63,320 bases of DNA, filler included, from Cercozoa sp. M6MM (GCA_040357565.1; 10 parts of 10 records of this genome joined end to end with filler, not necessarily neighbours in it), one strand, 5' to 3'. Positions 1-27,855 are shown, counted from the first letter of the whole stretch. Numbers and translations: made by a program. Notes: a model not told the origin generated them from the letters alone.

Positions 1-38
1 CATTTACCCTCCATTTAACGCCTCCATACTTCGGACAG

Positions 39-902
39 TGTTCCCTGGTCGTCGCGCGAACCGCTGGAGACGCCGCGTCGCTTGCTGTAGCTTCCTGCAT
101 TGTTTGTACTCTCTGTTCCCCTCCCTCACCCCTCCTTCCCGTAGATGGCCGAGGCGCGAGGTGGAGAACATTCGACAGATCGTGAAAGAAATGAAATATC
201 GTCGTATGCCGGTCGATTCGGACTTTGGGCGTTTCTACCGCTTGCCTCTGGTATTGTGGCTTTAACCCACACACATACACACACATACACACACACCTTT
301 TGCCCCTCATAGGAACGACTCTCATCTACCCGACCAATCGGTTCGGAAACGCTGCCGTCACACGGGTGTGTGCATTGCTTCCGCAGCCTGTGGTATACCC
401 TTTAAACACCCCCCCCCCCCGCCCCACCCCTTTACCCCCCCCCCCCACCCCCTGTCGTAGGTACGCGCCAGGTGGCATCGACTTCCGTAAGAAGAACGCT
501 ATTGGTGGCGATACCGTAGGACTCCCTTTGCTCCCTTACCTCCTACCCCCTACCCCTACTACTGGTACATGCAGTGGGTCTCAATCACCGAGTACCCTGC
601 CGACGGGTCAGGTCCGCGTATTCGCTGCCTCATGAGTTACGGCAACTCGAGTCGTCGCTCCTCGAAGAACTACTTTGGTAGTGTAATCTTGTACCCTGCC
701 CCCCCCCCCGGGCCCCCCCCCCCCCCCCACAGACCAGATGCGCATGTTCGCCAAGAAGGAGCTGCGCGATTGCCCCTTCGAACGCGCCGACGTCGAGCGC
801 ATCGCCACCGAGCGCGAGTCGGTGCGAGTGACGGTTCCGATCGTTCAAGAAAACCGTCATACTACTGAGTCATCACTGAGACACCTGGTCCAACGTCAGT
901 AA
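39..902 (+). CDS. Penicillin/cephalosporin (GL-7-ACA)/acyl-homoserine-lactone acylase family Ntn-hydrolase, 3' part (beta-subunit C-terminus), spliced, 5' end outside window
   Basis: Manual splicing gives VPWSSREPLETPRRL..WPRREVENIRQIVKEMKYRRMPVDSDFGRFYRLPL|GTTLIYPTNRFGNAAVTR|YAPGGIDFRKKNAIGGDT|WVSITEYPADGSGPRIRCLMSYGNSSRRSSKNYF|DQMRMFAKKELRDCPFERADVERIA, stop TAA 900-902. The G(D/E)TWV..IE, LMSYGNS and Y.DQ motifs match the recalled C-terminus of Penicil_amidase enzymes. Confidence 0.75.
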
Positions 903-1338
903 ACGTCATTTAGCCATTTCGCACATCATAGATCGGGCTCGACTACAGTTTGGTAGTGACGTCAGTTCAGTTCAGTTTGCCATAAATTTTCATGGCTAGT
1001 GCAAACCTGCAACTTTCAGTACAGCGTCACAGCTTAACTACGACCAGTGCTGGACTTGCCTAGGATCACTAGGGTGTCGTATGTACAGTGTTCTGTACAA
1101 CATTCGATTGAATGTCGTATGTAAGTTTACAGTGGTTTGTAAAATCTAAATGAAGATAAAATCACATTTTACATCTATGGTGAGGGATACAACACGTCAC
1201 TTTTAGTTTGCTTTGGTTGGATCGTCACGGTCACGTCACAACGCGAGCGAAGGCAGGCGGCGCTTTCATGTTACATGGGGACCGAGTGGACGGAGACGGG
1301 GCGAGTTTGGTCGCTTTGGGGACCCTCAACTCGGAGCT

Positions 1339-2088
1339 TTAGAACGTGAAACGGTAGACGTTGGGACCGCAGATGACGGGCAGCTGGTCGCAGTCGTCGC
1401 CAGCCAGACGCTCGCACAGGTTGTCCTTGATGCCGAGGAACTGCGACGGGATCGCGTCGCGCAGCAGCGTCCACATGCACCTGCTTACATCGAAATGATA
1501 AAGGTGAGGCACTTGGAGTTCAAACAAAGATTGTACTTGGTCAGCGGGGCATCCTTGGCCTTCTGCACGAGAGCCTGGGCGTCGGCGAGGATATCGCCGT
1601 TGGTGATGAGCTCCTTGACCTCACCCGGGCACGTCGTCGTGTTCTTGAAATCGTTGTGACCGAAGAGGTCCGTTGATAGGTCGACCGTCTCGGCAAAGTT
1701 CTCGCCGAGGTGGGCAACTAAATTTACAAGTGAAGAAGGGACGAGGTAAGGCTACTCAAGCATGGAAACAATGGAGTAGCAGCAGACGCACCGACAGCCA
1801 CGAGCGACTTGTACTGCGGGGAGTCCTTAGAGAACGGGCCCGTGTACTCATCGGCACCGTCCTTGCCACACGCGTCGATATCGTAGCAGCCCATCAGCGA
1901 GACGCCAATGTTCGCTGAGAAAACAATACATGATACAATTGAGCCACGTCGACGTACACCCAGTCCTTGAAACAGAAGATATACCGTAGTTGGGCGGGGC
2001 GTGGGCACCCATCACAAAGCCTGGGTAGGGCCATGCGCCACCCTTGACCGGCTTGTCGTTGAGCGACTTCGGGCCGAGGAACACCTCT

Positions 2089-2124
<36 letters not shown>

Positions 2125-2933
2125 ACTTATGTTCATAAGATACACAAATTCTACAACATAAATTTTAAAAAGCGCGAGTACCGGTGCCGTTGGGCGACGG
2201 CCAGTACGAATCGAGCGAGTCTTCCACATCGTTCCAGAAGGGACGGCCCTATCCACAGTACCGTCGTAAGATAGGGTAAAAAATATATTGTAGTGTATGC
2301 AAATCTGTGTTGTAAGTTTATATTTAGGGTACCTGGTAGACGGTGCCGTCAGTGCCGATCACCAGCTGGTAACCGACATCACACCAGCCACGGCCATCCT
2401 GGTGGAAGTCCTGAATGGCGACCATCTGCTCGTCATCAGGGGAGCCCCACGCAGTGTGGTGAATCGTGATCTTGTTCACGTCGGCCTGCGGAATGATCTC
2501 GGTCAGCTTGTCGACGCAGTTGCACGCAGCATTGCCAGCGTCGTTCCAGACGCGAGCACCCCAGTCGCCACGGGTCTGCAAAGAGGAAGATCCAAAGCCA
2601 CATGTGATCGGAGTATGGGTGGGTGAAGGAGCATGGGGAGGGGGCAAGAAATTTTAAATTTACCTTAAAGGGCACAGTGTTCAGCACGTAGTGCTCGAGC
2701 GCGCTCGATTCCGCACCGTAGTCGGGGATCACACCCCAGGCTAAGTGAATCATTACAAGTCAGTTTGAGCACTAATGTGTCACTTATTTCCAGCACTCCA
2801 ACCAATGTGAAAGTGCCGCAAAAATGCGCGCAAACACCACTGCGAGAGAACAAGTGATACCACTGCACTTCGTGCCGACTTCACCGGCTGAGACAGCAGC
2901 GGCACCGAGGGCAACAGACGCGAGAAGCTTCAT
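1339..2933 (-). CDS. Secreted PGRP-like N-acetylmuramoyl-L-alanine amidase (Amidase_2 / T7-lysozyme fold), paralogue 1, multi-exon
   Basis: Signal peptide MKLLASVALGAAAVSA. Motifs TRGDWGAR, ITIHHTA, IQDFHQDGRGWCDVGYQLVIGTDGTVYQ|GR, GAHAPPNY|ANIGVSLMGCY and FGHNDFKNTTTCPG contain the Zn ligands His, His, Cys and the catalytic Tyr. Stop TAA at 1339. Confidence 0.92.
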
Positions 2934-3646
2934 CTTGACGTAAGAACAAGAAGGAACGGGAAGCGGTGACTATGTTGTGCAGTGACTTGGCTGGCAAGAC
3001 GCGCACCTCGAACAGTGAGAACAAGAAAGAACAAGAAAGAACAAAAGACAAAGGCGATGTGTCCCGAAGGCGGGAGGAACGAGCCAGCGCTCCATCATTG
3101 CAACGGCATTGCAACGGGTGCTGGGCTGGCCGGCACTGATGCTGCTCCCAGTGAACACGGAAATCACTCGCAGCAACCGCTAAGTGAGATGTAACGGCGC
3201 CAGTGCCCACCAATGATGCAATGATGCGACCAACTGCGGTTGTGACGGCCAGAAACCGGTTGTTTGGCCATAAAGGAGCGACCCGTATCTGATCACGCGA
3301 CACTGAAACCGTTTCAGGCACCGACTCCCAACATCGCTGTCCGAACGATACTCGTGCGGGTCGTAGCGATAACAAGTGCAAAATAGTATCAAGGACGCCC
3401 ATTGACGTGTTGAAAGCCGCCTCGAGTGCGCAAAGCCTGGGATTTGCAGGAGGCCAGCTTTGGAGAGGCAAAGTTGACACACATTCGTGCTCACGTTTCT
3501 ACTACGAACCACTCCAGTGTCTCCTTTGAACGGTGCTATGTAAATTGATCAACACAACCTGGCAGTGCAGCTGAGCATGATGTTGAGATTGGGTTATTGT
3601 GTGAATCGTGCTGTGTGAGCCACAGTGAGAGAGGCACGACATACAG
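2934..3646. promoter_or_regulatory. Putative bidirectional promoter between PGRP-1 and class C GPCR-1 (about 713 bp ATG to ATG)
   Basis: Divergent start codons at 2933 (-) and 3647 (+). No specific cis motif identified. Confidence 0.5.
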
Positions 3647-4884
3647 ATGCTTCGGGCGTCAGTGCTGCTCTGCGCGGTGCTCAGTGTCATTGACGCGCGG
3701 ACATTTCGCATTGGCGTGATTTTCAAGAACAAGCGATGGCTTGAGGTGGGTCGCGCTCATGTTCGCGTGTTCGCTGAGCACCGAGCAACCTGATAGATGT
3801 CGGTTGTTTGTCAGGCTTACAATATGACAAAGCTCGTGGTCGAGGAGATCAACAACAGCACCGAAGTCTTGCCGAACGACACGCTCGAGCTCGTTTACGA
3901 TCCTGCAGCTGACAACGCGGCCGAGGTGCGTTGTGCGTCTCCGCTGAGCAATGTTGTCATTTCTTTTTCCATATTCGCAGTGGTCATCATCACTGCCGTA
4001 CAAATGTTACGTGAGTTTTCTTTCAGTGTTTCTTCAAGCTAGTTTTGCGAAATTAGCTTGTGTGTAAGCACAGAACAACCACGAAAGGTTCGACCTCATT
4101 TCAAAGGTGGACGACGTTACGTTTGAGGTCACTTGCGACGAGTTCTATGGTGCATCGAGATTCTCTTTGGCGGCTAACTGGGATGATGCTGTGAATTCTA
4201 ACTGAACAGAGCCACTGTTCGGTCCGTCTAAGTTTCCGTCGAACTACACTCGTGGCAACTTCAGCATCAGTCTTTTCCTGCAGAACCATGTCTCAGAGGT
4301 AAATTACAGGATTGGCTTTTTTCTTGCTGGTGTTCAACTGAATTGACTCCAGGCACTCGCTCTGACCATGGGTGTCAGCCGCGGCCTTGACATTGATGCT
4401 GGCTCTTTTCCACACAACGCATCGTTGCAAAGTGAAGCCCAGGCTGTCGATGTGGTATGTCTCCATTCTCTCATTTCCTTCCCTTGTACAGTAGATTTGG
4501 TGCACTTGTATCTCAGATTGTGACGTCGACTCTGTCTGCACACACAGCTCAGTTCCTGGACTACATGAGCATGATGTACTCCCCGTGCATGTGCTAGTGT
4601 CTCTGTCCATTGGATGTCCCCGTTGTCTCTGTGTGCAGCAAGATGCCAGTAGTGGGTTGGATCTCCAACGCCGGCACACTTGTGAACAAGAACGTGCGCA
4701 GTCACAGCGGCTGGTTACAGCGTGTCACACAAAACGACGACCACTCACAAATGGCCGTGATCTCCTTCCTTCAGCGACTCGGAGTGGAGCGCGTCGGTGT
4801 CGTGTACTTGCCGACTGATGACGCCGGTATCGCCGTGCGCGACCGTCTTGCAGTGGTATCCCTGTGTGTGTGTGTGTGTGTGCG

Positions 4885-4915
<31 letters not shown>

Positions 4916-7900
4916 TGTGTGTGCCAAAGTAAACGTGCTGTAGCATTTCCGAGTCGTGAGTTTCGAACTGCCAGACGTGCTGCTGGAGCATGCGCTGTCT
5001 GACAAAGGCAGCGAACTGTACAAGTCGGTACAAACTCTCGAGTCTTGTCAAATAAGATAATGTGTTGTACATTTTCTTTCCGCAGGTGGCCGACACGATC
5101 CGTGAGTCAGGCGTGCGTGTCCTTGTCATTTGGCCTAGCTGGGCCATTCAGGTATTTTGTCTGCAGTTCGTATTCTCCTTGAATCTTATGGTCGTACTCT
5201 AGGGCACGATTCGTTGGCTTGGCGCACACAACATCATTGGCGATCCCCGCTACACCGTGATCATGTCGACGGACGCCAAAACTGTACCATTGCGAGTTCC
5301 TGTACGTTTGCTGCTCGTCGCATCAGTACTTTTGTTGTTGTGCACAGTACGCATACCGCGAGTTCATCCTTGCGAGCAACAGCACGCTGCTGTCGCTGCC
5401 GCTGAACTCGTCAATCACGGGCATTGAGACGTACGATAGCACTTCAGTTCGAGTGTTAAAGCCTCGATGACATGCATTCTGTCTGTGCTCAGTGACCGTA
5501 CCGATGAAGAAGCCATCGCACACTACCGCAGTCGCATGGTCGGCTTGTTCTATGCCTCGGCCGTGAACAACGACGATGCGACGCCAACAAACACGACGCT
5601 TCGTGTACTGCAGCTTGCGTGTCTACTGCAAATTATTCTCTGATACTCTTTGGCGTGCACTGTAGTACAAAGAACAGGCCCCAGCGGAAGCGACCGGTGT
5701 CGACAGCATCATCGCGTCGCTCGAGGACATGGTACCTCTCGCTGTTGGAATCGCACGCATTTTTCCAAGCATCTCTGTGCCATAGGTTCGCACAGCCGCC
5801 ATGGGAATCGACGCCGCCGTCAAGTGGGTCAACGAGGAGAATGCCCAGCGCGACGCGAGTGATCAACTTGAGCTCACGCGTGAGCACATTCGCGACCAAA
5901 TGCGCACCGTGTCGATCTACTCTTCTCGATACGGTACGGTGTGCTCGGAGCTTTGTTCACACTACTCCCATACGTGAGCAACTGTCTAAAGGAAACCTAA
6001 CCTTCCTGCCGAATGGTGATCCCGACGTGCCATTTGCGATTGTGAACTTTCGTCCCAACGCAGAGGCGTCTGATGGACTGGAGGCGGTGCGAGTGGGACA
6101 CTTTGCACCCTCTTTCATTCAGTCCGAGCAGGAGGTGTTGCCGCTCGAAATGACGGAGGAGCAGAAGCAAGGCATTCGTTGGGCAGACGGCATCGTGGGC
6201 TACCAGAACTCGCCCTTTGTCGTACCGTCCCTGCTTTTATAATTTTACGGTAAAAGATCTCTGAAATCACGATGGAATATGTAGCCAGTGGAACTGCCCT
6301 TGGCTGGCATGTTCGAGTTGCTCGACTTTTTCGGCTGGTCGCGTGTCGGTGTCGTCATCAACGCGGCCGATCCCGAGGTGCAGAGTGTGCGCGACGCCTT
6401 CGCAACGCGAGCGGTATCCCATTTTTCAGTCCTTCCTGTTTGCCCTTTGTCCAGCTTGAATGTATCTCCTTTTCCATCATCAGAACATGGAAGCCGTGTT
6501 CTACGGTGCGCCGGACCAGCCGTACGACGAGGTGTACCGCAACAGCGGTCAGTACGACTCTCTGGCGGAGCGACTGATGGAAAGCGACCTGCGCATCATC
6601 GTTCTGTGGCCGTCTTGGAACGCGGAGCCGCTGCTGCGCTGGCTCACGATTAAGGGGGTACCATGCTTTCCATGTTTGATACTTTGATCTATCGGTGTGA
6701 CCAATCAATGTGCTCGTTTCTTTGTGCAGATCATTGGCAATGACCGATTCACTTTTATTCTGGCGCCGACTGCGACGCGCGTTGCCTCGTACTCTTTGTC
6801 GTATCATACCCTCCCTTATCTAGCCTTACGAACTGTCTGACAGACTGGTGTACGGTGGTACCAACGATCTGATGGACAACTCGCCTGCGACGCTGCAGCG
6901 TGGTGTTGGCATGTTCTCTCTCACGGTAAGTCTTTTTTCAAGCAATTTTGAGTGAGAATGACTGTATCTTTGGATGGTGCAGGTTGCTGATGAGGTCGTG
7001 CTGATGCACAACTGGCGATCGGACCCGAGCAACACTGTATTTTGCCTTGACATGGGGAGTTTAGTCCTTCGATATGGGGTCTATGTATTCTTGGTGTAGA
7101 AGGTGACCCCAGTGCCGTTCGCAACGCTTGAATCGACGACAGCGGACTTCAAGGTGTTCAACGACGCCGCCGATGTTGTGTGGTCTGATAACCAGATTGG
7201 TCTGCTAAACCGGCCTCTGTCAACGCCCGTGGTCATCAAGAAGGTGCCGTTTCTCTTCAGTTTCTTGTTGGACCTTTGACATGACATGTGTTGCCCTGCA
7301 GACACGGCCCATGGACAGTGGCGTGCGCGTGACCCTGTTGGCACTCTCGTTGATCGGTATCGTCGCGTGTGTCGGCACCTTCTTCTTCCTGGTGGCTAAG
7401 CGTCACTTGCGTTACATCCGAATGTCGTCCTGGAAGGTACTACCTTTGGATGAGTGTACCCTGTAGAGGAAGAGAGAGAGAGTGTGTGGTTTTTTGCTTC
7501 CGTAGATCAACAGCGTCGTTCTGTTCGGTCTCATTGTGGCCTGCATTGGCGTCATCATGCTCGGTATCGGGTCCGAACAGGTCGCCGACTACGACGAGTC
7601 ACTCGGATACATTCCCTTCAACGTGGACGAAAGTGCCTTTCTCGGCGTTTGCAACGCCCGGATTTGGCTGCTGCCGATTGCTTTCACTCTGACGTTTGGC
7701 GGTTTGTTCAGGTAGGTTTCGAACGTAGGATTTTGCCCTGTCTTGGTTCTGCAGGTTTACTGCCTTGTATCAACAGCAAGACGTTCCGCGTGTGGCGTAT
7801 CTTTGTGAACCACCAGTTCAATGTGCGGAGTATCGGCGACATCCGACTGCTCGGCATGGTCGGCTTGCTGCTGTTCGTGGACGTGCTTACCATGGCGGCC

Positions 7901-8802
7901 TTCCACATCAGTAGCTCGTTCGAGCGCACTTTGACTGTCGAGAACGAGGTAGGGCGCGAAATGTTATGCTTTCTTACTGTTAGGTGTGTTGAAACTCTGC
8001 TGGACTGGTGGGCAGGTGCCCTTCCCCATCGAGGGCAACTTGGATGCCACAGAGCAGTTCTACTACGAGCACTGCAGTGCCGACGGTTTGGACACGTTCA
8101 TGGGCCTGTTCATTGTGACCAAGGGTCTGCTGCTCGTGTTCGGTCTGTGGATGGCATCGGAGACACGCAACGTCGAGATGTACCTTGTGCTTTCATGCAT
8201 GATACCTCGTGGTTTGTAATGTGCCTTTTGGGGTGTGGACAGTCCGGCACTCAACGACAGTCGCAGCATCGCGACTTGTGTCTACGTGGTGGCGCAGGTG
8301 TCGCTCATCATGATGCCCGTGTCGTTTGTGTTCGACGAGAACGACGGCCAACAGTCGCGCTACCTGTTGGTGGGCCTATGCGTGCTCACGATGGTGTACT
8401 CTGTGCTCGGCCTGCTCTTCGTGCCCAAGATCTACAATGTACTACACCTAGAACAATTACTTGTAGACATAGACAGTGTAGTATGCTGTTTGTTGACTGT
8501 ACCAAACAGGTGTTTACGGGCCAAGCTGAGAAACTCACGACGGTGATGTCGATGAACTCGTTGAGTGGCACAAATGGCACGGCCAGTGTCGTGAGCGGCA
8601 CCGTCAAGCGCACGGCCACTCTGCGAACCAACACCAACACAGTAAGTGGCTATCCCACTGTACCGCAGCAGAAGCATGCATACATACTTACTGCACTGTG
8701 TTTGTGCAGTCTTCGACAGCAGAAACGGGCGATGTCGAGCTGCAGATCGTCCAGAGTGAGGCAGGAGGCTCCACTGTTGTCAGCACCGCACTGACGTCAT
8801 GA
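3647..8802 (+). CDS. Class C (GABA-B-like) GPCR: signal peptide, Venus-flytrap ectodomain with internal duplication, 7tm_3; more than 25 exons
   Basis: N-terminus MLRASVLLCAVLSVIDARTFRIGVIF..|AYNMTKLVVEEINNSTEVLPNDTLELVY is a typical VFT start. Also LDFFGWSRVGVV. The 7TM has GABA-B hallmarks RYIRMSS, CNARIWLLPIAFTLTFGGLF|SKTFRVWRIF, ETRNVE|IPALNDSRSIATCVY and LLFVPKIY. Stop TGA 8800-8802. Confidence 0.9.
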
Positions 8803-10403
8803 GCACACAATGAAATCATGCCAAGTGTACAGACACGAGTGCACAGATACGGAGATATCCAAACCATCTACCATAGCAACCATAGCAACAACAATCACAC
8901 TCACGACACTGACATTCACAGTTCGGTTTTCATTTCTTCCTCCGCTCTTTGTCACCTTGGCTGCCTGCATTGATATCGCCGTCAGTCCAAGTTGCACTGT
9001 ACTTGGTCCACGCCAGTCCGGAACGTTTGCTTGTAATATAATAGAATGAACAACCAAATCGAGCGTTATCTAATTTCGAGGTTCTTTGAAGAAAGTGCTG
9101 AGTTTCACCGCAAGACGGCCACTCACTTTTAGCAATACGCTTTCAAGTATGTATGTATGTATGTATGTATGCATGCATGTATGTATGTATCGTATGCATG
9201 CATGCATGTATGCATGTGTATGGCGTGTGAGCGTATGTTTTTTCTTTGTTTAAATAGCAACAACAAAAACCAAAAAATATGTCACCATAGCGCTCAAAGA
9301 CATGAATGGAATCCAAAATTGGACGAGTACATCGTAACAATTAGAACGCGGCAAAGAAGGTGTAACTTACGTCACAAAACCCTAAGTACCGGAGGTCAAG
9401 ATCTGCCCAGCATCAGCGTTTGACTTGGGGATAGCTAAACATTGTAGCGGCCGCCGACACTCTCACAGAGGACATGGCAGACATTTATTTGAGCTGGCTA
9501 CATATATGGAAAACAGACAGATCTCTCAGCACAGCCCAAGATTAGAGCTTAGATGCAAACCATAGTATTTAGCTACTGTTTGACATGCCTTGGTTCGCCC
9601 AAACGTCTTTGCTGCCAGCGTGGGGTCAAAAATGCCGAGTCGCGGCAGTTTCTCCACGTTTGACTGAAAGGCCACTGCGTGACCCGAGTTTCACCAGTGT
9701 TTGGCCCTGGCGGCGAGTTTTTGACCTGCGTCATTCCGCGCAATTGCCAATTTAGTTGTTTCTTTGCCGAAACTCGAATCGGCGAAGACCCGGATTGTCG
9801 CTGGGGTAGTAACACGGGCGTGCTGCATCCGAGACCCCGCTTCGCACGCGTCCAAGCGAAGGCTACCAACAGACGTACGAAATGGACGAACCGGTAGAAT
9901 ATTTGAAAGTAATGTAAACACCACACTCTCTTGAGTTGAGACTTTACCAACCCGCCAGTTGACAAGACATGGTTCAAGCAATAGGTCAGAAGCGTCAAGA
10001 AGACCGCTAAGCAAGGTGGGCTGATTTTTGTGCTGGCCAGAGCTGTGTGTCTCAGTACGCTACGAGGGCATGTACATTGGGTGTGTGTTGTGTCTGCGAG
10101 TTCGCATGCAACGCCAAAAGGCGGGTTTCGACCTTTTTTGTCGTGGCTGATTTTGGTTTCTGTTTTGGTTTGTTGTTGGGCCGTTTTCGCGTTGTCGCGC
10201 TTTGCCATGAATGCAATGACCCACCTTTGAGTAGGAAACGCTTTCATGATGGAAAACACCACTGAGATGATTGCCGTCATCGTTGGCATTCTTTTCATCG
10301 CCATCGTCCGTGCCTGTACCATTCTTCGTTCGCTAGCATCAATAAGCCAGCCTTGACCCCCCCCCAATGTAGACAAGAAGAGCACGGTTGTACCCAAGAT
10401 CCC

Positions 10404-27204: not shown

Positions 27205-27656
27205 GAATGTGAGAATCAACATTCTGCAATTGCAATTTGCAAAAATGCGGAAGGAGCGCCGGAGTGACANNNNNNNNNNNNNNNNNNNNNNNNNNNNNNN
27301 NNNNNNNNNNNNNTTAATTAATTAANNNNNNNNNNNNNNNNNNNNNNNNNNNNNNNNNNNNNNNNNNNNTATGTTTTTCTTTCTTTCTCTGTGTCTATGT
27401 GTCTATGTTTCGCTATGTGTATATATATATCTGTATATATGTTAAAAAAATATGTGTATATTTACATAGATTATAAAGAGATTATAAAGAGATTATGAAG
27501 ATATTATCCATATGATCTGTATTATCTATGCATTCTATATATATGTATATAGATTATATAGATATTATCCATATTATATTATCACACATATCATATTATC
27601 TTATATATATATATATATAATGTTATTCGTGCATTCTCTGTGTCAATGTGTCGAAG

Positions 27657-27855
27657 GTGCGCCATGGCACTGCTGCACTCGCGCGTGCGACGCGTCTTTG
27701 TGCTGCGGCGGCAGGCGACGGGCGCCCTCGGCAGCTGGCACTCGCTGCACGTGCTGTCGCAGCTGAACCACCGACTGCAGGTCTTCCTGGTGCTGCCCAG
27801 CAACGGTAGTCTGAATCTCCATGTGCCGCCCCTTGCCGACTCTGTCGCTGTATGA
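27657..27855 (+). CDS. ADAT3: tRNA adenosine-34 deaminase non-catalytic subunit ADAT3/Tad3, last exon
   Basis: After the AG acceptor: CAMALLHSRVRRVFVL..GALGSWHSLHVLSQLNHRLQVF, the characteristic Tad3/ADAT3 C-terminus. Confidence 0.8.

Follow-up and report, generated by a model that had tools for sequence, protein, structure and literature searches.

The window examined here is a stretch of 63,320 nucleotides (filler included) in which parts of ten records from the genome of Cercozoa sp. M6MM (GCA_040357565.1), an assembly of 2235 contigs, are joined end to end. Its first part, contig C448 (positions 1-10403), carries two genes arranged head to head: one on the minus strand (1339-2933) for an N-acetylmuramoyl-L-alanine amidase, and one on the plus strand (3647 to ~8802) for a class C G protein-coupled receptor (GPCR). 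Contig C78 carries a diverged copy of this pair. We regard it as likely that the two are ordinary genes of a bacterivorous amoeba, encoding a prey-digesting or antibacterial amidase and a chemosensory receptor, which are neighbours by ancestry and were co-duplicated once. The amidase would act on the peptidoglycan of bacteria, whether prey or invaders, and strip it of its stem peptides inside the phagosome or extracellularly, and the receptor, as one of many chemosensors in the genome, would sense a small extracellular ligand. A two-gene segment of about 7.2 kb was copied long ago, and both copies have stayed intact under purifying selection.

The organism has been renamed Lemnamoeba sinaloensis and is an amphizoic marine amoeba of the Apofilosa (Rhizaria), isolated from fish gill (PMC11069148; PMC13746701). 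Its draft genome comprises 23.67 Mb with 9694 predicted genes (PMC11069148). Genes occupy 84% and intergenic DNA 6% of this genome, which is rich in simple sequence repeats (SSRs) and for which a chromosome-level assembly has been described (PMC13746701). GPCRs and peptidoglycan are mentioned in neither of these two papers.

The Amidase

The amidase gene (1339..2933, minus strand) is composed of eight exons (2933-2861, 2740-2664, 2575-2333, 2248-2182, 2086-1985, 1914-1792, 1717-1537 and 1480-1339; stop codon TAA at 1341-1339) with a total of 1008 nt. They encode a protein of 335 aa of the Amidase_2 family and PGRP fold, and their translation is identical to the annotated public protein P0160 (MHM6MM_005902). 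Exon 1 (2861..2933) supplies a hydrophobic, signal-peptide-like N-terminus (residues 1 to ~17), a feature that the protist homologues have in common in the alignment. Exon 3 (2333..2575) covers the catalytic domain's N-terminal half, where H89/H90 (the HH motif) and Y119 are located. Exon 7 (1537..1717) contributes two zinc ligands, the second histidine (H249) and, within a Cys-Pro-Gly motif, the cysteine C258; a helical linker comes after them. Exon 8 (1339..1480) adds a short four-cysteine extension at the C-terminus, modelled with low confidence (predicted local distance difference test, pLDDT, <60) and 72% identical to the C78 copy over 32 aa.

Against the Pfam profile of Amidase_2 (PF01510), P0160 scores 48.8 bits (cut-off 26) over profile positions 3-131, and exon 3 by itself reaches 26.5 bits. 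The complete catalytic set (H89/H90, Y119, H249, C258) is present both in P0160 and in the C78 copy. The columns of H89/H90 and Y119 are invariant across an alignment of 40 sequences, and H249 and C258 were assigned by alignment to the PGRP3 structure 4z8i. The zinc cysteine is a mark of catalytic PGRPs. When solved structures were searched by sequence, animal PGRPs were the top matches. An AlphaFold2 model of P0160, with a core pLDDT of 86-96 and a low-confidence insertion of ~40 aa (residues 138-174), led in Foldseek to amphioxus PGRP3, Drosophila PGRP-LB and a PGRP-S as the best hits (E 2e-9 to 1e-8); T7 lysozyme was matched at 5e-4. The sequence-only reading of this DNA had described the product as a secreted, catalytic amidase; the intact zinc ligands and tyrosine, the PGRP-LB-like fold and the signal-peptide-like N-terminus bear this out, so that the label of a predicted secreted, catalytic-type zinc amidase is justified, with peptidoglycan cleavage as its expected activity.

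When 1.8 billion protein representatives were scanned with exon 3, a single close cluster was returned, which comes from the same organism; the other matches were foraminiferal proteins (Elphidium, Bolivina), protist-like proteins and many bacterial amidases. In a quick IQ-TREE phylogeny of 146 Amidase_2 domains, unrooted and moderately supported, a protist clade was recovered (Shimodaira–Hasegawa-like approximate likelihood ratio test, SH-aLRT, 94) that unites the three Lemnamoeba genes with two proteins of foraminifera and three that are unnamed. Its sister group (88) is made up of bacterial amidases, the named members of which belong to Rhodothermia, Bacteroidota and Elusimicrobiota. The animal PGRPs fall across the tree, and the Lemnamoeba amidases are not members of the metazoan PGRP clade. 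The name PGRP, under which the gene had originally been flagged, thus describes fold and Pfam family correctly, but not the phylogenetic position: the gene falls within a protist clade beside the bacterial amidases and remote from the PGRPs of animals. The tree makes a bacterial origin of the Lemnamoeba amidase plausible; this origin is unproven because the support is moderate and the tree unrooted.

The Class C Receptor

The receptor gene (3647..8802, plus strand) was resolved into 29 exons separated by 28 GT-AG introns of 38-88 nt, giving a product of 1153 aa. This local splice model was guided by conservation with the C78 paralogue and checked for frame and splice sites. The first ten exons lie at 3647-3745, 3815-3925, 3981-4010, 4074-4149, 4210-4298, 4353-4454, 4517-4584, 4639-4855, 4944-5027 and 5086-5151; exons 11-20 at 5203-5295, 5348-5430, 5493-5620, 5685-5731, 5786-5938, 5979-6221, 6285-6413, 6484-6657, 6730-6788 and 6844-6925; and exons 21-29 at 6983-7036, 7100-7243, 7302-7436, 7506-7711, 7777-7948, 8016-8179, 8243-8438, 8477-8641 and 8710-8802, the last two being uncertain. 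Homology searches were conducted exon by exon, and the joined model served only for checks of frame, splice sites, length and hydropathy.

The seven-transmembrane (7TM) domain occupies five exons (7302..8438, plus strand). Three colinear matches to 7tm_3 (PF00003) of 33.7, 29.8 and 46.3 bits, two of them above the cut-off of 33.5 bits, together cover profile positions 4-251 (window 7314-8429), and single-exon Pfam searches likewise yield 7tm_3 matches. The hydropathy profile of the local model contains six peaks of at least 1.6, with a weaker TM3 segment read from the sequence, and TM7 carries the Pro-Lys-x-Tyr motif (PKIY at residue 1064). Among solved structures, the only class C proteins matched by two of the 7TM exons were GABA-B1, GABA-B2 and GPR156 (E 0.006-0.03). 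The gene had been called a GABA-B-like class C GPCR from its sequence. Its class is settled by the 7tm_3 matches, and the structure matches, at these per-exon values, suggest that it is probably GABA-B-like.

The longest open frame of C448 (7454-8794, plus strand, 446 aa, arginine-rich) overlaps this domain and is mostly spurious, with a real exon only at about 7777-7948; the other 7TM exons are in a different frame. A search of public proteins with this frame and with an ectodomain exon gave no match among proteins of 0.55-1.75 times the query length.

The ectodomain, of ~767 aa, is unusual. A putative signal peptide and a first module (3647..6221, plus strand), a divergent, probably flytrap-type (ANF_receptor-like) module with an insertion of ~100 aa after its first helix, are followed by a second module (6285..7243, plus strand) at the position of the cysteine-rich domain found in most class C receptors. 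The receptor is devoid of such a domain, since the whole ectodomain contains just three cysteines. The ~320 residues before TM1 instead repeat part of module 1 (4944-5295 versus 6285-6788), as reciprocal cross-matches between the modules show: a stretch of module 2 (6481-6660) matches module-1 exons of C78 (E 8.6e-7), and a stretch of module 1 (5074-5157) matches a module-2 exon of C78 (E 1.3e-5).

Several observations suggest that this ectodomain is probably of the flytrap type. The best exon-level Pfam score is a weak match of 4598-4810 to ANF_receptor (E 0.06, profile positions 73-126). An hhalign comparison of 4631-4861 with the ANF_receptor exons of six paralogues falls in the same register (P 6e-4, probability 29%), and the ESM Atlas neighbours of module 1 are ANF_receptor and Peripla_BP_6 clusters (0.90-0.91). 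The exon-level signals are consistent with one another and weak. A six-frame genome search with the ANF_receptor profile did not recover this ectodomain, a Peripla_BP_6 profile search of the genome gave no match, and Pfam was silent on eight other ectodomain stretches. The comparison of an ectodomain exon with solved structures returned only noise, and an ESM Atlas search with module 2 (6484-6663) stayed at chance level and was uninformative. Of the earlier description as a Venus-flytrap receptor, the class C receptor stands, and the flytrap domain is to be taken as probable. BLAST detected no similarity to the ectodomains of the other class C genes in the genome, where this ectodomain type is found only on C448 and C78.

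A Single Ancient Co-duplication

The second pair is colinear with the first. C78:24330-31286 aligns with window positions 1354-8550 across both genes, with 70-86% nucleotide identity in the aligned pieces, exon-by-exon protein matches and the same gene orientation. The pair had been reported from sequence to recur with clearly diverged paralogues, and this colinearity both substantiates the recurrence and reveals its cause, the joint duplication of amidase and receptor. The sole close paralogue of each of two exons searched, one from the 7TM domain (97% identity) and one from the ectodomain (71%), is likewise on C78. The flanks of C448 show no convincing homology to those of C78 (one marginal match, E 0.005), so that the duplicated unit is confined to the two genes. 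A unit of ~7.2 kb with exactly these two genes was thus duplicated once, long ago.

The age of this event is apparent from three lines of evidence, namely synonymous divergence (dS) of 0.5-1.9, differences in intron content and intergenic DNA that can no longer be aligned. Computed on conserved coding blocks between C448 and C78, dS is lowest in the amidase (0.49), intermediate in the 7TM domain (0.71) and highest in the ectodomain (1.9). The corresponding ratios of nonsynonymous to synonymous divergence (dN/dS) are 0.28, 0.12 and 0.18, and both copies of the cassette are intact and under purifying selection. Introns have been gained or lost in both genes: the C448 receptor has two introns near 3926-4073 that are missing in C78 (26711-26930), the C78 receptor (27462-27735) has one within what is the C448 exon 4639-4855, and two introns of the C78 amidase have no counterpart in C448, one interrupting the stretch from the zinc histidine to the zinc cysteine and the other the final exon. 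The intergenic regions (713 nt in C448, 634 nt in C78) retain similarity only in short words.

The unevenness of dS within one duplicated segment, together with the 97% protein identity of the last 7TM exon, may reflect gene conversion or codon bias. Redundant contigs also inflate copy counts in this draft assembly. C1014:1-4932 is 100% identical to C78:22439-27370 and represents no further copy of the cassette; a third Amidase_2 match on C1014 was accordingly rejected as an additional amidase gene.

Is the Linkage More Than Ancestry?

Given that the two pairs go back to one co-duplication, they represent one independent adjacency, not two. No independent recurrence of the linkage was found in this genome or among the metagenome loci scanned. 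The genome holds at least 18 class C receptor loci, and the 16 other contigs with 7tm_3 matches are free of Amidase_2 matches. The third, more divergent amidase paralogue of Lemnamoeba, P0082 (C1596:30-1051, minus strand, cut by the contig end), is a neighbour of an ABCG-like transporter gene: ABC2_membrane exons lie directly upstream on the same strand (C1596:1751-2533), and no receptor similarity is present in the 2 kb of C1596 available there. Neither GH25 nor phage-type GH24 lysozymes, which were sought near receptor genes as well, could be detected genome-wide at exon-level sensitivity, and Amidase_2 was the only one of these three families for which genes were found. In a metagenome scan, the 80 loci with relatives all showed uninterrupted matches of 24-46% identity, as for bacterial genes, and a GPCR was present in 0 of the 80. 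Adjacency of an amidase and a class C receptor was not encountered in the literature searched.

The sequence-only reading had envisaged a more intimate relationship, in which the enzyme would produce a bacterial cell-wall ligand for the co-regulated receptor. Spelled out, the secreted amidase would free stem peptides or denuded glycan, and the flytrap of the receptor would bind the product, such as peptides of the L-Ala-D-Glu-meso-diaminopimelic acid type or D-amino acids. We judge such a module, whose signal would serve prey chemotaxis, phagocytosis or defence and which would have diversified after its duplication as a unit, to be unlikely. The proposal draws on the head-to-head order, on the short shared upstream region and on the four intact genes in the two cassettes. 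Moreover, flytrap domains bind amino acids and other small ligands. A precedent is available in fAR1 of Dictyostelium, an amoebal class C receptor that binds folate and lipopolysaccharide (PMC5969738).

Four observations weigh against mere neighbourhood by ancestry and are also compatible with a functional link. First, the estimated probability of a chance adjacency is low, at ~0.7%, before correcting for the large number of other pairs of genes that might have drawn attention (the estimate assumes 2 independent amidase lineages with 2 neighbours each, 18 receptor loci and 9694 genes). Second, all four genes have survived for a long time after the duplication, in the same orientation and with similar spacing (713 versus 634 nt). 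Third, the ectodomain type is restricted in this genome to the two amidase-linked receptors, and its ligand is thus not predictable from other receptors. Fourth, the intergenic regions, otherwise unalignable, have both kept one near-palindromic 12-mer, TGAAACCGTTTC (3304..3315), which is the sole 12-nt word that they have in common.

This 12-mer lies within the divergent intergenic region (2934..3646), the 713 nt between the two start codons and the presumed site of both promoters. The start codons had been placed at 2933 (minus strand) and 3647 (plus strand) in the sequence-only reading, coordinates that our exon models reproduce. As a candidate cis-element the word is a marginal lead only. 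Its pairwise E is 0.022, and its genome count of 5 equals that of a reversed control pattern (5). The copies are those of the two cassettes, the C1014 duplicate of the C78 copy, C836:3877-3888 and C1195:1414-1425.

The evidence on the other side concerns the adjacency itself. It arose in a single independent event, the neighbour of the third amidase paralogue is a transporter gene and not a GPCR gene, and the 12-mer does not exceed its control. Closely spaced neighbours are to be expected, and a head-to-head spacing of 713 nt is unremarkable, because 84% of the genome is genic (PMC13746701). A functional link between amidase and receptor has no support beyond the adjacency, and the pairing need be no more than a plausible coincidence.

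The same adjacency could also be read in the opposite sense, with the amidase destroying the ligand of the neighbouring receptor and thereby sharpening or ending the response. Drosophila PGRP-LB limits signalling by degrading immunostimulatory peptidoglycan, and this scavenger amidase is among the closest solved structures of P0160. By analogy, the Lemnamoeba enzyme might quench a signal in a comparable manner. We consider this very improbable, as it shares every weakness of the proposal that the receptor detects the amidase's products and, in addition, would call for a receptor that binds intact muropeptides, which is purely putative. Finally, an origin of the pairing or of its recurrence in mis-assembly, bacterial contamination or redundant contigs, conceivable for a fragmented draft that includes a pair such as C1014 and C78, is hardly credible, given that both genes have many short GT-AG introns and hence are not bacterial, that C448 and C78 are only 70-86% identical with different intron content and are thus true paralogues, neither redundant contigs nor alleles, and that NCBI carries an independent annotation of the amidase protein for each of the two contigs. 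Ancestral neighbourhood of two ordinary genes, followed by one co-duplication, remains the account that we favour.

Comparison with Known Systems

Amidase and receptor each add a new member to an established family. The amidase resembles the catalytic PGRPs and T7 lysozyme, for example Drosophila PGRP-LB, in its fold (Foldseek E ~1e-9, TM-score by target 0.55-0.75), its Pfam family, its zinc ligands and catalytic tyrosine, and its signal-peptide-like N-terminus. It differs from them in its position outside the animal clade, in the ~40-aa insertion and the four-cysteine C-terminal extension, and in one extra residue between H249 and C258. PGRP-type genes are also present in another bacterivorous amoeba, Acanthamoeba castellanii, which has two of them with undetermined function and for which a review reports no linkage to GPCRs (PMC11377244). 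Acanthamoeba, however, belongs to a different supergroup, the Amoebozoa.

GABA-B-like receptors are already known in amoebae. Recognition of bacteria by free-living and amphizoic amoebae is largely an open field, in which a single case has been studied well, that of the class C receptor fAR1 (GrlL) of Dictyostelium. Its flytrap recognises folate and lipopolysaccharide, and the receptor drives chemotaxis and phagocytosis (PMC5969738). Described as an amoebal GABA-B-like class C receptor, fAR1 is the nearest functional precedent for prey sensing. It differs from the Lemnamoeba receptor in that no enzyme partner has been described for it, and the Lemnamoeba ectodomain is far larger, with a partial internal repeat and a marginal ANF_receptor match. 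The metazoan GABA-B subunits and GPR156 share with the Lemnamoeba receptor the Pro-Lys-x-Tyr motif and the absence of a cysteine-rich domain, and they are the best solved-structure matches of two 7TM exons; the per-exon E values of these matches are nevertheless just 0.006-0.03, and the Lemnamoeba ectodomain is not recognisably GABA-B-like.

To our knowledge, no peptidoglycan-sensing GPCR is known, and none was found in the literature searched. If the receptor did detect the products of the amidase, GPCR-based sensing of peptidoglycan would exist in a protist, and, outside animals, PGRP-fold enzymes would be tied to signalling through GPCRs. The system would then be simple and testable, in a rhizarian that can be cultured and whose genome is small. 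The descriptive results are solid regardless of this proposal: a clade of rhizarian PGRP-fold amidases that groups with bacterial amidases and not with animal PGRPs, an unusual ectodomain composed of a probable flytrap and a partial repeat in two receptors, and two genes that were duplicated once as a cassette.

Further Features of the Locus

Among sequencing runs, the locus was found only in the DNA source run, and no RNA run containing it was found. The flanks of C448 (1-1338 and 8803-10403) hold no recognisable gene when their open frames are compared with Pfam. An open frame of 274 aa (9573-10397, minus strand), which may run past the contig end, and proline-rich frames at 195-865 are without a convincing Pfam match.

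Small tandem repeats are scattered through the C448 intergenic region (3018-3044, 3096-3117 and 3211-3227). SSRs also occur in introns, as (TA)17 in the amidase gene (2091-2123) and (TG)31 in the receptor gene (4863-4923), and in the flanks, as (GTAT)17 downstream of the receptor (9147-9237) and a further repeat at 268-296; their presence fits an SSR-rich genome (PMC13746701).

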